NCBI GenBank assembly: GCA_946965045.2
Contig: OX337229.1
Coordinates: 5,952,001 to 6,016,000 of the forward strand
Reading direction: 5' to 3'
Length of the DNA stretch: 64,000 nt
Source: Epithemia pelagica
Taxonomy: Eukaryota > Protista > Bacillariophyta
Under the pieces are notes generated by a model. It searched no databases, was not told the origin of the DNA, and saw nothing but the letters and a program-made list of their open reading frames with translations. Positions 8,881 through 40,033 of the stretch are shown piece by piece. Position 1 is the stretch's first letter, and the number at the start of each line of letters is the position of its first letter. A program made the translations under genes and the position numbers.

Positions 8881-9179
8881 ATTCATCGTAGTGTTGGACC
8901 CACTGGAGTATACAGTGTTGCTACCTAGTCGCTATAGTCACCACAACCACACCAACGACGACCACTTTCAACGTAGAGCTCCAGGGATAGGTGTCATGTT
9001 TTGCAATAAGGGCGATCCCGATCACCATTCGCCAATTCTTCCAACCCCCAGCGGGGGTAGCTTATAGTAGGGTGTAATCCCTCGTCGTGAGCTCCTTGTT
9101 GTTGTGTCTGCAATAAAAGGAGACAACCATTCCATTCGAAAAGCAAAGTGCAGGTTTTTGGGATAGGGTAACCTACACA

Positions 9180-9635
9180 CTTCGACAGATGAGCGAATCG
9201 GGTCTTTATTTTTTCAAGGAGCGGATGCGTCCCTTCGATTCCGGCGAACCGAACGTGCAACTTCGTTTTAGATCGGAAGAAAGCAGCAGTCGATGCTGGT
9301 CCGGGAACCTCTAAGTTTGTTGAATGTGGTGTTAGAAAAACAATATAACTGAAATACTTCGTGGACTTTGACGCCGACACCAACAAGTTCTGCCATTGTT
9401 CGTAAAGCTGCGTCTCACAAATTGGACGATCCTGGGGCAATTGGATTGTGCACTGAACAAAGTAGATGTATAGCGTATTTTTAGTCCTTCTTGCAATGAT
9501 GAAATCAATGCCTCTGTATTGTCGGTTGAGAGGGACAAAAACAAGTACCTCGATATTCGATGGCCACTCGATGGTCTCGGGCACCGCTTCGTCTCCTCCA
9601 GGAACATCGAGCACCAATTTCGTTGCAGCTTCCAG
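9180..9635 (-). pseudogene. Gene B copy 0: C-terminal REase-like fragment only
   Basis: Near-identical to the 3' end of B1, with motif PLNRQYRGIDFII...FVQCT. Truncated by a deletion junction at ~9635. Confidence 0.8.
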
Positions 9636-11507
9636 GCTTATGGGTCAGCAGAGAAACTCTTGGTGGCGGCAACCCATACGACCGTCGAAGGAGAAAGAAT
9701 AATAGTGGCTTTTGAGAGCAATGAAAACAAACTAGACTTTTGCTTCTATCGAGACAAAGACGACTACACCAGGTACACCGCCGACAAGGCACTGGGCCGA
9801 ATCAAGGGAAACAGGGACGAATTCAAGAAATTTTGCGAGTCGCAGCTCCTACTTATCCAAGATAGCGATAAGAATGGCGTTCTCCCCACAAAAAGGACCT
9901 ACGTTCAAGTCCATGGCGTCAATGAATTTGACAATCTAGACAGCGACATTCGAAAAGACAAATCGTATGCGTTGGTGGTGGCGGGAGAAAGCGGCAGTGG
10001 TAAATCAGTATTTTCTTGCCTTGAATCAATGGAGCGTGGTTTTATCCCTATATACATGTTGCTACGCTTGCGGAAAAACAAAAGGGAGAACGAGGGAGAG
10101 GACAAGAAAGGGGACGAAGAATTCAAGAAGGAGGAGACAGGAGAAGAAAAGAACCAGATGGGGCACAATGCTTCCGAGGTCTACACCAGGAAACCAGAAA
10201 GCGAGTTTAATGGCAGGAAACCAAACAATGAGTTTCCACACATACATAAGTTTTTGCAGGGGGTCCTAAACGTTCACAAAGAAAAGAGCAGCAATCATAT
10301 TGATGTCATCGATAGCTTGAAGACCAACCTCAGCGCATCACGAAACAAATGGGCGAGGGAGATTCTCAAACAAGCTTTCGAGCAATTTTGTGAAGGCGAT
10401 GCAAACGCCCAATCATGGAGCGAAGGTCGTTGGTCGAGTGATGCATTGCCAAGTAAGGTTGCACTGATTCTTGATGAGGCAACGGATATTGATCTGGTCG
10501 AGGGCTTGATTGACACTGTGAGGCAGACGTACCGCGAGATGGATGGTTTAGTTAAGGAACGTATCATTCTGGTCCTGGTGGGCACTGGTTTGGATTTAAT
10601 CCGTGATGGCAATCAGGTAGGAACAAACCCTGCCTAAAGTAGGCTAATTCGAATGAAAGGACCAGATCTGCTGCATCTTGAAAAGACAGGCGTGATAAAA
10701 CCAGAAATAAGTCGGGTAGTATCCAACGGGCTGTTCTCTCGAGTTCTCCAGACCAACTCAAGAATGCTCTTTAGAGGGATCCTCCCCGTTCTTCGACAAG
10801 GTTTTCACTCAGTCGACGGTGACTTTGATCCTCAAACGAAGAAAAGACGATACGAGGAGAGACTGAAGGCCATTGCATCGTTTGGCCCACTCATGGATTA
10901 CGGGGTCAGGTTCTTTGTCACCCAGAATATTATGGGTGACTTGTCCTCGAATAGGCGGGATGAGTTGTTGGCCGAATCCTTTGTGTATCATCTCTCGACG
11001 GCGATTGGAGCACCATTGAGAGAACACGCAGCTGTCTCGAGAATTCAACAGATTGAGCTAGAGAAAGTGAAAAACCTCAGGAAGCCTTCAAACGAGATCT
11101 TCAAAGTGGGCCAGGGCCTTGCTGTCAAGTCCGGTACCTCAGCAGCTCTCAAATACATGTCCTGTTTTGGTTTAACCTGTCCTATCCGACCTTCATTTGG
11201 CAATGAGTTGGAAGAGTTGACAGCTTTACATTACCAGCGTTTAATGGAAATTCAAGGATATTGCCCGCGGCGTGTCACGCTACGGTATGCATGGCCACCC
11301 AAGTCCAACAAACGTGATGGCAGTATTACCGACGCGGTTATCAATGATCTGAAAGAGAAGCTAGCAAAGCAATCGGAGATGGAGCTGCCTAACCTTTCGG
11401 TCGGACAAGAAGATGGTCGGGAGTGCATTGTCTTTTCCCAAGGAACAGCTTCTGCGCAAGGTGGGGTTGTCCTTGTTCTTCCAACCCCCAGCGGGGGTAG
11501 CTTATAG
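9636..11507 (+). pseudogene. Gene A copy 0: 5'-deleted P-loop NTPase, premature stop, 3'-truncated
   Basis: Walker A GESGSGKS, Walker B LILDEA, TAA at 10635-10637 where other copies have TAT; ends at the array junction. Confidence 0.85.
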
Positions 11508-37128: not shown

Positions 37129-37203
37129 GTCACGTTGCGACGTGCGTGCGGCAGCTGGAAGAATAGATCTCACCCCTTGTTTTGTGTTCGATCATGAAGA
37201 AGA

Positions 37204-40033
37204 ATGGACGTGTCTCGAGATTCGACCATGACGCGACGTCGGCAGCGTACTACTACTACTAGTATTCCTCCATGGATCTGGGCCTTGTTCGTAGTGGCCG
37301 TATGGGCGATTGTTCCAACCAAGGGGGTGGAAGCATTTCCCCATCTGGTTCCACGACGACGACCGTTGTGTTCCCAAGAAGGAAGAGTCTGGGAATCTTG
37401 TCGTCGTCCCTTGCACAACAACAACAACCGGATAAAGAATCAGGGGCACTGAAAAAAGAGCTCGATGCTGCGAAAGCGCTCCTCAGTGTCGACGAGTATT
37501 CCTTGCTGGAAAAATTGATTCAAAATCCAGACGCCGACATTGCCAATGTTATCGGCGTCTGGATTTTGAATCAATTTTTCCAGCAAGGAATACTCGATAG
37601 TCGTAGCATCGACAATGAGGGCAGCAGCAGCTGCAGCAGTGCCAGTGACGTAAATGTTCACAGCAGAGCAAACGTCGACCAACCCTTGAGTTACCAAGAT
37701 TTTCTAGCCTATGTGTTGAATGCTCTGGTGGACGACAAAAAGTGGATGAATCTGGATTCCGTTATTGTTGACAGGAGACGTTTATTTGTAGCAAAGGAAT
37801 ATGGGTCAGCAGAGAAACTCTTGGTGGCGGCAACCGATACGACCGTCGAAGGAGAAAGAATAATAGTGGCTTTTGAGAGCAATGAAAACAAACTAGACTT
37901 TTGCTTCTATCGAGACAAAGACGACTACACCAGGTACACCGCCGACAAGGCACTGGGCCGAATCAAGGGAAACAGGGACGAATTCAAGAAATTTTGCGAG
38001 TCGCAGCTCCTACCTATCCAAGATAGCGATAAGAATGGCGTTCTCCCCACAAGAAGGACCTACGTTCAAGTCCATGGCGTCAATGAATTTGACAATCTAG
38101 ACAGCGACATTCAAAAAGACAAATCGTATGCGTTGGTGGTGGCGGGAGAAAGCGGCAGTGCTAAATCAGTATTTTCTTGCCTTGAATCAATGGAGCGTGG
38201 TTTTATCCCTATATACATGTTGCTACGCTTGCGGAAAAACAAAAGGGAGAACGAGGGAGAGGACAAGAAAGGGGACGAAGAATTCAAGAAGGAGGAGACA
38301 GGAGAAGAAAAGAACCAGATGGGGCACGATGTTTCCGAGGTCTACGCCAGGAAACCAGAAAGCGAGTTTAATGGCAGGAAACCAAACAATAAGTTTCCAC
38401 ACATACATAAGTTTTTGCAGGGGGTCCTAAACGTTCACAAAGAAAAGAGCAGCAATCATATTGATGTCATCTATAGCTTGAAGACCAAGCTCAACGTATC
38501 ACGAAACAACTGGGCGAGGGAGATTCTCAAATGCGCTTTCGAGCAATTTTGTGATGGCGATGCAAACGCCCAGTCATGGAGCGAAGGTCGTTGGTCGAGT
38601 GATGCATTGCCAAGTAAGGTTGCACTGATTCTTGATGAGGCAACGGATATTGATCTGGTCGAGGGCTTGATTGACACTGTGAGGCAGACGTACCGCGAGA
38701 TGGATGGTTTAGTCAAGGAACGTATCATTCTGGTCCTGGTGGGCACTGATATGGATTTAATCTGTGATGGCAATCAGGTAGGAACGAACCCTGCCTATAG
38801 TAGGCTAATTCGAATGAAAGGACCAGATCTGCAGCATCTTGAAAAGACAGGCGTGATAAAACCAGAAATAAGTCGGGCAGTATCCAACGGGCTGTTCACT
38901 CGAGTTCTCCAGAGCAACTCAAGAATGCTCTTTAGAGGGATCCTCCCCGTTCTTCGGCAAGGTTTTCACTCAGTCGACGGTGACTTTGATCCTCAAACAA
39001 AGTCAAGACGATACGAAGAAAGACTGAAAGCCATCGCATCGTTTGGCCCACTCATGGATTACGGGGTCAGGTTCTTTGTCACCCAGAATATTATGGGTGA
39101 CTTGTCCTCGAATAGGCGGGTTGAGTTGTTGGCCGAATCCTTTGTGTATCATCTCTCGACGGCGATTGGAGCACCATTCAGAGAGAACACGCAGCTGTCT
39201 CGAGAATTCGACAGATTGAGCTAGAGAAAGTGAAAAACCTCAGGAAGCCTTCAAACGAGATCTTCAAAGTGGGCCAGGGCCTTGCTGTCAAGTCCGGTAC
39301 CTCAGCAGCTCTCAAATACATGTCCTGTTTTGGTTTAACCTGTCCTATCCGACCTTCATTTGGCAATGAGTTGGAAGAGTTGACAGCTTTACATTACCAG
39401 CGTTTAATGGAAATTCAAGGCTATTGCCCGCGGCGTGTCACACTACGGTATGCATGGCCACCCAAGTCCAACAAACGTGATGGCAGTATTACCGACGCGG
39501 TTATCAATGATCTGAAAGAGAAGCTAGCAAAGCAATCGGAGATGGAGCTGCCTAACCTTTCGGTCGGACAAGAAGATGGTCGGGAGTGCATTGTCTTTTC
39601 CCAAGGAACAGCTTCTGCGCAAGGTGGGGTTGTCCTTGCTCTTCTTTTCGACAACAAGAGCAAGACCGGTGAGCTAGTGACGATTCAATGCAAACATCAT
39701 AGAACAATGGCGGGTGCAGAAAAAATTAAATCCTGGTGGGCGTCCCTCGGAATTTCATTTCAAAACAACGATTCCAGCCCCAAAGTTGGTAAAGCTGGAC
39801 ACTCTTACACTGATTTGGAGGCCCTGTGCACTTTGTTGCAGGCAAGATTACGGCAAGAGCATCATTCGGCAACACTATCTCTCGGTGATCGCATCATGGC
39901 GTGCAGCTTCCGCGAACCGCCTGATGCAGAATTCCCTATTCCCGATTACAAGCACGCCCCTGTTTGGTTTCGTGAAATGTTGGAACCGACCATATCCACC
40001 TTTCAACTCCGTGACGCCGAGGAGGAGAACTAG
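37204..40033 (+). pseudogene. Gene A copy 4: the only full-length architecture (presequence + NTPase + REase-like C-terminus), two frameshifts
   Basis: Lacks the 13-bp duplication but has a 1-nt loss in the T-run near 37336 and a 2-nt gain near 39179. It continues past the junction into AQGGVVLAL...VTIQCKHH, a PD-(D/E)xK-like pattern. Confidence 0.75.

Follow-up and report, generated by a model that had tools for sequence, protein, structure and literature searches.

A tandem array in the diatom Epithemia pelagica: a probable young segmental amplification with live C and TatB-like genes and dead NTPase-nuclease genes as passengers

A four-unit tandem array on contig 2

The genome assembly of the diatom Epithemia pelagica comprises 60.5 Mb in 23 contigs. 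The stretch analyzed here (hereafter the window) consists of 64,000 nucleotides at positions 5,952,001-6,016,000 of contig 2 and contains a tandem array built from four genes: A, encoding a putative STAND-like nucleoside triphosphatase (NTPase) with a C-terminal nuclease, B, encoding an AAA_22-type NTPase with a nuclease-like core, C, encoding a predicted heptad-repeat coiled coil, and a TatB-like gene. Self-BLAST and repeat finding in the window delineated repeat blocks that are 96–99% identical and lie 7.69–7.80 kb apart between 9036 and 39644. A 19-base unit boundary motif, TTCTTCCAACCCCCAGCGG, occurs at 9036, 11476, 23219 and 30911, and by this motif the four copies of a unit of about 7.8 kb between 9036 and 40033, as outlined in a preliminary description of this DNA, proved exact. 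B, C and the TatB-like gene are each present three times, and A four times plus one 5' fragment. The sole run of Ns in the window (5879-6078) lies outside the array, which is itself free of gaps. The array and its units are:

9036-40033, no strand: whole tandem array of four junction-defined units, ending in the sole 3'-complete copy of A and also found on a second contig, ctg1245l
9036-11481: unit U0, internally deleted, with a 3' fragment of B and a 5'-truncated A as all that remains
11476-23224: unit U1, holding a 4.0-kb insert at 16330-20363
23219-30916: unit U2, a plain unit
30911-40033: unit U3, with a 936-bp internal duplication and a terminal A copy that uniquely keeps its 3' end

The second haplotype, contig ena:ERZ21939226:ctg1245l, was pieced together from three overlapping stretches and is 95–99% identical to the window. 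It reads flank-B-C-TatB / A'-B-[10.8-kb insert]-C-TatB / A'-B-C-TatB / A-full-flank. Three full units lie here between the same left and right flanks, and both U0 and the 4-kb insert are missing. An assembly artefact, a concern raised together with the preliminary description, is ruled out by the presence of the same array with other insertions on ctg1245l, by the unit-specific insertions that mark separate copies and by the lack of an N run inside the array. The differently interrupted array on ctg1245l also gives the ancestral order, flank-B-C-TatB-A-flank.

All copies of A and B are disabled

The copies of the two NTPase genes in the window are:

9634-11481, plus strand: A of U0, truncated at the 5' end (starting from near codon 90), with a TAA at 10635 and truncated at the 3' end at the junction
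20778-23250, plus strand: A of U1, with a presequence open reading frame (ORF) from the ATG at 20778, a frameshift caused by a tandem duplication of 13 nt (21117-21144) and a 711-aa ORF at 21115-23250 that ends before the nuclease core
28470-30942, plus strand: A of U2, with a 13-nt duplication as in U1 (at 28809), stops at 29365 and 30487 and a truncated 3' end
37204-40033, plus strand: A4, the terminal copy in U3 and the sole one with the C-terminal nuclease domain, with ORFs at 37272-39224 and 39230-40033 and a +2 frameshift near 39179
9036-9638, minus strand: 3' fragment of B in U0
11620-13452, minus strand: B1, an AAA_22-type NTPase with a C-terminal D..QC(T) domain and an in-frame TAA at 12436-12438
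23363-25184, minus strand: B2, with the shared TAA, an 11-nt deletion near 24541 and a TGA at 23935
31045-32877, minus strand: B3, with the shared TAA as its single lesion

A is broken in 8/8 copies when both haplotypes are counted, and the frameshift of the terminal copy is common to both. Three of the A copies in the window are cut off at the duplication breakpoint itself. B carries one and the same TAA at codon 339 in 6/6 copies on the two haplotypes; intact homologues of 608–625 aa have a sense codon at this position and align in frame on both sides of it. Truncations, stops, frameshifts and the common TAA thus bear out the earlier observation that every copy of A and B is disabled. The simplest account of the common stop is that B had died before the copies, which now differ by 1–2%, diverged. 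We also considered an intron in place of the stop. A donor- and acceptor-like string is present, but an intron defined by it would measure 16 nt and be out of frame, and the homologues stay aligned in frame over this stretch, so an intron was rejected. Stops also occur in the only other B-like loci of the genome, on contig 18 and on contig 2 near 5.56 Mb.

The 5' end of A in the array (window 20755-21000) consists of a start codon and a signal-peptide-like, plastid-type presequence and is about 82% identical to 40536-40784, which is the start of the neighboring 662-aa gene (40490-42478). On ctg1245l, the 5' end of the terminal A copy (about 35.4-36.0 kb) holds an inverted piece that is 93% identical to the N-terminus of an A paralogue on contig 7, which suggests exchange between paralogues.

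C and the TatB-like gene are intact

The remaining two genes are open in every copy, as had been described. Their copies in the window are:

13944-14648, plus strand: C1, intact, 234 aa with 4 heptads and a 21-nt repeat at 14244-14320
25550-26338, plus strand: C2, intact, 262 aa with 8 heptads (25851-26010)
33348-34136, plus strand: C3, intact, 262 aa with 8 heptads
15419-16255, minus strand: TatB-like 1, intact, 278 aa
27124-27963, minus strand: TatB-like 2, intact, 279 aa
34922-35761, minus strand: TatB-like 3, intact, 279 aa

With the three copies on ctg1245l (227, 220 and 213 aa, with 3, 2 and 1 heptads), C is intact in 6/6 copies and its length differences amount to whole 21-nt heptad units. 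Among the array copies we counted 13 synonymous and 36 non-synonymous changes (omega 0.90). Variable residues fell at 4/89 of the positions conserved in distant homologues versus 20/124 (P 0.008). C is under constraint but quick to change where it varies, in line with the earlier view that it was kept and is diversifying; it is a live gene and encodes a small, likely nuclear coiled-coil protein. A search of the genome found C in the array only.

The TatB-like gene, also intact in 6/6 copies, shows 12 synonymous and 6 non-synonymous changes (omega 0.16, P 1e-4), and its copies are identical within one haplotype. It is a live, housekeeping-type gene under strong purifying selection. It was assigned by its N-terminal pattern and its neighbors in the Atlas: the protein starts with MF..E, a short hydrophobic helix and an amphipathic helix, without a presequence, and 97/100 of its nearest Atlas clusters carry TatA_B_E (0.91), the top ones being eukaryotic. 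In these respects it resembles the plant mitochondrial-type TatB, from which it differs in that it does not match Pfam TatA_B_E (PF02416) at E≤1 and has a low-complexity C-terminal half.

Four sequencing runs, available as contigs only and none recorded as RNA, were compared with the locus. In three of them contigs span the whole examined stretch. In run X4 (2024), very deep contigs cover 13893-16228 only (C1, the spacer and TatB-like 1) and none falls on A or B; an Illumina adapter adjoins one contig end, at 13893, which lies 51 nt ahead of the ATG of C. X4 looks like a transcriptome in which C and the TatB-like gene would be expressed and A and B silent.

One junction accounts for the co-amplification of four genes

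The two ends of the duplicated segment are:

9036-9041, plus strand: left breakpoint, a 6-base microhomology (TTCTTC) found again at 11476, 23219 and 30911
39628-39644, plus strand: right breakpoint, within A, just ahead of the nuclease core

At 39628-39644 the terminal copy A4 carries on to its own 3' end. The same stretch of A is followed instead by the left-flank sequence of 9036 at 11481, 23224 and 30916. Both parental sequences contain TTCTTC at the junction, three units have identical junctions, and a junction sequence common to all units points to a single founding duplication. A, B, C and the TatB-like gene are repeated together because this duplication copied everything between two breakpoints, one of which cuts A, and because the right breakpoint lies inside A the three truncated A copies of the window are by-products rather than separately disarmed genes. 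The pattern of dead nucleases next to a live partner likewise follows from one duplication that cut A, with the stop in B most simply already in place. The array is thus probably a young segmental tandem amplification of two live genes, C and the TatB-like gene, and two dead NTPase-nuclease passengers, A and B.

We infer the following order of events. The ancestral locus would have read left flank, B (minus strand), C (plus), TatB-like (minus), A (plus) and a metallophosphoesterase-like gene. The founding duplication would then have joined a point within A, equivalent to 39644, to 9036, just 3' of B, via the 6-base microhomology. Next, unequal crossing-over and gene conversion would have altered the number of units and given them mosaic histories; divergence among the copies is indeed mosaic and partly concerted. 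The internal deletion in U0, the 4-kb insertion in U1 and the 936-bp duplication in U3 would be later events. A single junction, a 6-base microhomology, a gene cut at the breakpoint and mosaic divergence are all features of microhomology-mediated tandem duplication followed by unequal crossing-over. The array differs from such duplications in that its breakpoint lies a few bases from a solo terminal inverted repeat (TIR) arm resembling those of miniature inverted-repeat transposable elements. This 14-base arm, CCCCCAGCGGGGGT, sits 9 bases inside each unit start, at 9045, 11485, 23228 and 30920 (6 matches vs 0.01 expected), and paired arms make a small TIR element at 1451-1515 (wider span 1439-1527). 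A break at a transposon end may have set off the duplication; lying a few bases from the breakpoint, the arm may or may not be the cause of the initial break.

An older, inverted duplicate of TatB and A is found on contig 2 at 6045255-6048670, about 29-33 kb right of the window end. Here the A paralogue remains open over a long stretch (825 aa, counted from a TTG), with the motif Asp changed to Val, and stands head-to-head, about 30 kb right of the window, with a decayed TatB-like fragment containing 3 stops, the only TatB-like sequence outside the array; no other intact copy was found in the genome. A is open and TatB dead in the inverted duplicate and the reverse holds in the array, which fits the ordinary resolution of duplicates and not an obligate module.

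Families of A and B

Although broken in the array, A belongs to a larger family. A search of the genome returned an intact 855-aa paralogue on contig 7 and at least 20 related loci, and 26 relatives were found in databases, including complete MMETSP transcripts of 860–907 aa. Walker A and Walker B are invariant in the family alignment, and the C-terminal motif in most members reads AQGxDV, 10–15 residues, IQCKH; the array copies have Val at the motif position where most of the family has Asp. In an AlphaFold model of the family (predicted local distance difference test score, pLDDT, 76), residues 179-645 matched STAND NTPases in Foldseek, namely Apaf-1 (E 4.5e-4), NAIP/NLRC4 and CED-4 (prob 0.98–0.99), and VIA-align matched the same residues to the plant NLR WRR4A (Z 10.2), PAB2304 (Z 10.1) and NLRP3 (Z 9.1). 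The model thus shares the nucleotide-binding and helical/winged-helix module of STAND/NLR proteins such as Apaf-1, CED-4, NLRP3, plant NLRs and PAB2304/SSO1545. Unlike these, A has no LRR, WD40 or TPR sensor by Pfam or by secondary structure of the model and carries a nuclease effector at its C-terminus.

Residues 622-839 superposed on the PD-(D/E)xK domain of Cdn1 (PDB 8z4i) with Z 7.0, rmsd 3.4 over 115 residues and 15% identity, a Z of 7 being modest and in the range of chance matches. The C-terminal domain of Cdn1 is a PD-(D/E)xK nuclease of the Can2 family (PMC12825302). The core of the A family follows an alpha-beta-beta-beta-alpha-beta topology, with D718 and Q737-x-K739 placed with strands 719-725 and 730-739 (strands 2 and 3), where D and QxK are expected in such a nuclease, an arrangement shared with Cdn1/Can2. 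The likeness ends with the CARF domain, which A lacks, with the Val in place of Asp in the array copies and the neighboring paralogue, and with the QxT of the B family. For 22 A-family members Pfam gave no more than weak AAA_22/AAA_16 matches, searches of PDB sequences returned no match to A, and no family reached the Pfam curated cut-off for A, the C-terminal half of B, C or the TatB-like protein. Taken together, the predicted structure and the family alignment support A as a STAND/AAA+-type NTPase with a C-terminal PD-(D/E)xK-like nuclease.

B has fewer relatives. We found 38 among 1.8 billion representatives, the intact ones (608–625 aa) on transcript-like contigs, and 11/15 family members matched AAA_22 weakly in Pfam. 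The C-terminal domain aligned weakly with the nuclease core of A over three core strands (hhalign E 0.003, probability 10%); the family motif is D...QxT, with no Lys. The nearest Atlas clusters to this domain (0.95–0.97) are hypothetical proteins of oomycetes, trypanosomes (some with RHSP) and diatoms. An NTPase coupled to a restriction endonuclease (REase)-like domain, as had been proposed for both genes, was upheld for A by the fold matches; for B it is plausible, given AAA_22, the Atlas neighbors and the weak profile alignment. The two genes had also been called unrelated. Judging from their sequences they are probably related, both being AAA_22-type NTPases with weakly alignable C-terminal cores.

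The layout of A and B recalls the Crinkler/RHS-type (CR) C-terminal modules, which, in the summary of Zhang et al. 2016 given in PMC5289972, combine a P-loop NTPase, a helix-turn-helix and a REase. Shared features are the order of NTPase then REase-like nuclease in A and B (with weaker support for B), the stramenopile lineage, multi-copy families with fast turnover and many pseudogenes, and the oomycete and trypanosome-RHS Atlas neighbors of the B C-terminal domain. On the other hand, Pfam detected no Crinkler header at E≤1 in the intact A paralogue, the 22 A-family members or the 15 B-family members, no sequence-level match to Crinkler/RHSP families was obtained, the host is free-living and photosynthetic, and the array copies are all dead. 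The intact relatives of both families probably act in genetic conflict or immunity.

A functional module of the four genes is very unlikely

The preliminary description had cast the four genes as a toxin-antidote or effector-regulator module. Under this explanation B, and perhaps A, would be a nuclease toxin, C would be its antidote or regulator transcribed divergently from the same 0.5-kb spacer, and the toxins would have been disarmed while C was retained. B and C do lie head to head as described (ATG at 13452 on the minus strand and at 13944 on the plus strand), 491 bp apart; B has a nuclease-like core and a resemblance to Crinkler/RHS toxin modules, its omega is below 1, and C is intact in 6/6 copies. 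However, linkage of B and C did not recur elsewhere, in contexts that were few and short and give the comparison low power. The B-like loci on contig 18 and at 5.56 Mb of contig 2, and three contigs of B homologues (one of them, of 8.2 kb, with a distant homologue), yielded no C-like gene, and no B-like sequence was found on the three contigs of C homologues from other organisms, which at 1.0-1.6 kb are too short to be informative. In addition, with B stopped in all copies an antidote would have no target, yet conserved residues of C are constrained, and A belongs to the unit merely through the breakpoint. Co-duplication through one junction, the common stop in B, the housekeeping TatB-like gene and the lack of B-C linkage elsewhere all speak against the module, which we consider very unlikely.

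C and a possible link to the fungal Mug135_C family

Distant homologues of C are rare: three were found, at 40–53% identity and on short contigs, and no relative was confirmed when metagenomes were scanned with the C alignment. By language-model features, the nearest Atlas clusters to C are fungal Mug135_C (score 0.93, 210/256 features), and the ten best named matches all belong to this family or clan. The Schizosaccharomyces pombe gene mug135 is tdk1, a single-protein killer meiotic driver. Its product starts with an N-terminal region and a nuclear localization signal, continues as a coiled-coil stalk whose internal repeats are dispensable and ends in a DUF1773 domain of about 100 aa (PMC11551393, PMC11551426). 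Genes of the tdk family occur in multiple copies, including tandem pairs, and contain internal repeats (bioRxiv 10.64898/2025.12.28.696746). C is laid out in the same way: an N-terminal region and a basic patch are followed by a coiled-coil stalk that bears the repeats and by some 100 aa of C-terminal domain. It, too, is multi-copy and fast-evolving.

C could itself be a selfish or conflict gene, the diatom counterpart of the fungal Mug135_C/DUF1773 (Tdk1) killer meiotic drivers, with amplification and change driven by conflict, for instance through mutual incompatibility of variants, and with A, B and the TatB-like gene as bystanders. Besides the Atlas neighbors and the layout, this would fit an omega of about 0.9 with conserved residues spared, the range of 1–8 heptads over six copies and a separate Mug135_C-like ORF elsewhere in the genome. 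This 92-aa ORF on the minus strand of contig 5 (557239-557355; L039:837-1112:-) scores just under the Pfam cut-off for Mug135_C (PF08593; 21.2 bits, E 3e-4), has a coiled-coil-like frame upstream and may be a Tdk1-family-like gene in a diatom, with no sequence relation to C. Against a C driver, the PF08593 hidden Markov model (HMM) matched none of 8 C-family members or their C-terminal parts at E≤10, and in a scan of the genome it passed over C, its sole match being the unrelated ORF on contig 5. That ORF was in turn matched neither by the C-family HMM nor by BLASTP, and the C-family profile found neither Tdk1 nor anything else among PDB sequences. AF2 modeled C poorly (pLDDT 54, below 50 in the C-terminal domain), Foldseek gave no meaningful match to PDB or Atlas, and a perfect 21-nt repeat is expected to change by slippage even in the absence of selection. 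HMM, BLAST and fold support for the family are thus absent, Mug135_C is to our knowledge confined to fungi, and we know of no drive phenotype for C. Kinship with Tdk1/Mug135_C is an unconfirmed lead, every sequence test being negative, and amplification driven by C appears unlikely. A bolder form would make C the first single-protein killer or conflict factor of this kind outside fungi, whose heptad variants (1, 2, 3, 4, 8, 8) and fast-changing surface residues are mutually distinguishable and kept by meiotic or intragenomic conflict in a sexual pennate diatom; this seems rather improbable.

Possible selection for dosage of the TatB-like gene

Amplification could instead have been selected for the dosage of the TatB-like gene, with the rest hitch-hiking. 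All six copies are intact, with an omega of 0.16 and identity within a haplotype, the genome otherwise holds just one decayed copy, and X4 contigs cover the gene. A need for three copies is without evidence, though, since one intact copy would satisfy purifying selection, and gene conversion would account equally well for the lack of differences within a haplotype. Selection for dosage, which we find quite unlikely, is a variant of segmental amplification and not an alternative structure; the amplification may have been neutral or favored by the dosage of C or TatB.

Insertions and neighboring features

Two rearrangements are specific to single units of the window:

16330-20363, minus strand: 4.0-kb insert unique to U1, with a 901-aa ORF at 17440-20145 (minus strand)
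36193-37128, plus strand: 936-bp internal duplication in U3, containing the additional A 5' fragment

The 901-aa ORF had no Pfam match at E≤0.1. The 10.8-kb insert of ctg1245l (about 12325-23157), missing from the window haplotype, contains two large ORFs on the same strand, of 950 and 1370 aa (L032:2781-9750), with no Pfam match at E≤0.1, and may be an undescribed mobile element. Outside the array, the window also holds a divergent ORF pair at 46876-47703 (minus strand) and 48012-49145 (plus strand), both of whose C-terminal ends are ribosomal protein L7/L12 C-terminal domains.

Weighing the amplification and its meaning

Several observations sit uneasily with a passive amplification of two live and two dead genes. 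The omega of B, 0.43, is lower than expected for a neutral sequence (P 0.004 when an equal-rate model is assumed, a weaker result should transitions be favored); B may have been functional until recently, with the stop spread by gene conversion, or its two halves may still be used. In C, an omega near 1, varied repeat lengths and a divergence of 4–6%, compared with 1–2% in B, exceed what a passive duplicate needs and hint at diversifying selection, which the duplication does not account for. The library type of X4 is unrecorded and its data are contigs only, so that expression of C and the TatB-like gene and silence of A and B are inferences, and the unit count was read from assembled contigs.

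Segmental amplification nevertheless probably explains the array, and carries a caution: genes that have been amplified together should not for that reason be taken as functionally linked. The locus also places a housekeeping gene in an unstable array, as every intact TatB-like copy found in the genome sits there, together with a member of a rare, fast-evolving and repeat-variable family, C. Finally, it documents two diatom NTPase-nuclease families with a Crinkler/RHS architecture, plausible in the case of B, one of them STAND-like with intact, expressed relatives. In a major group of phytoplankton, both families are thus candidate factors of immunity or conflict.

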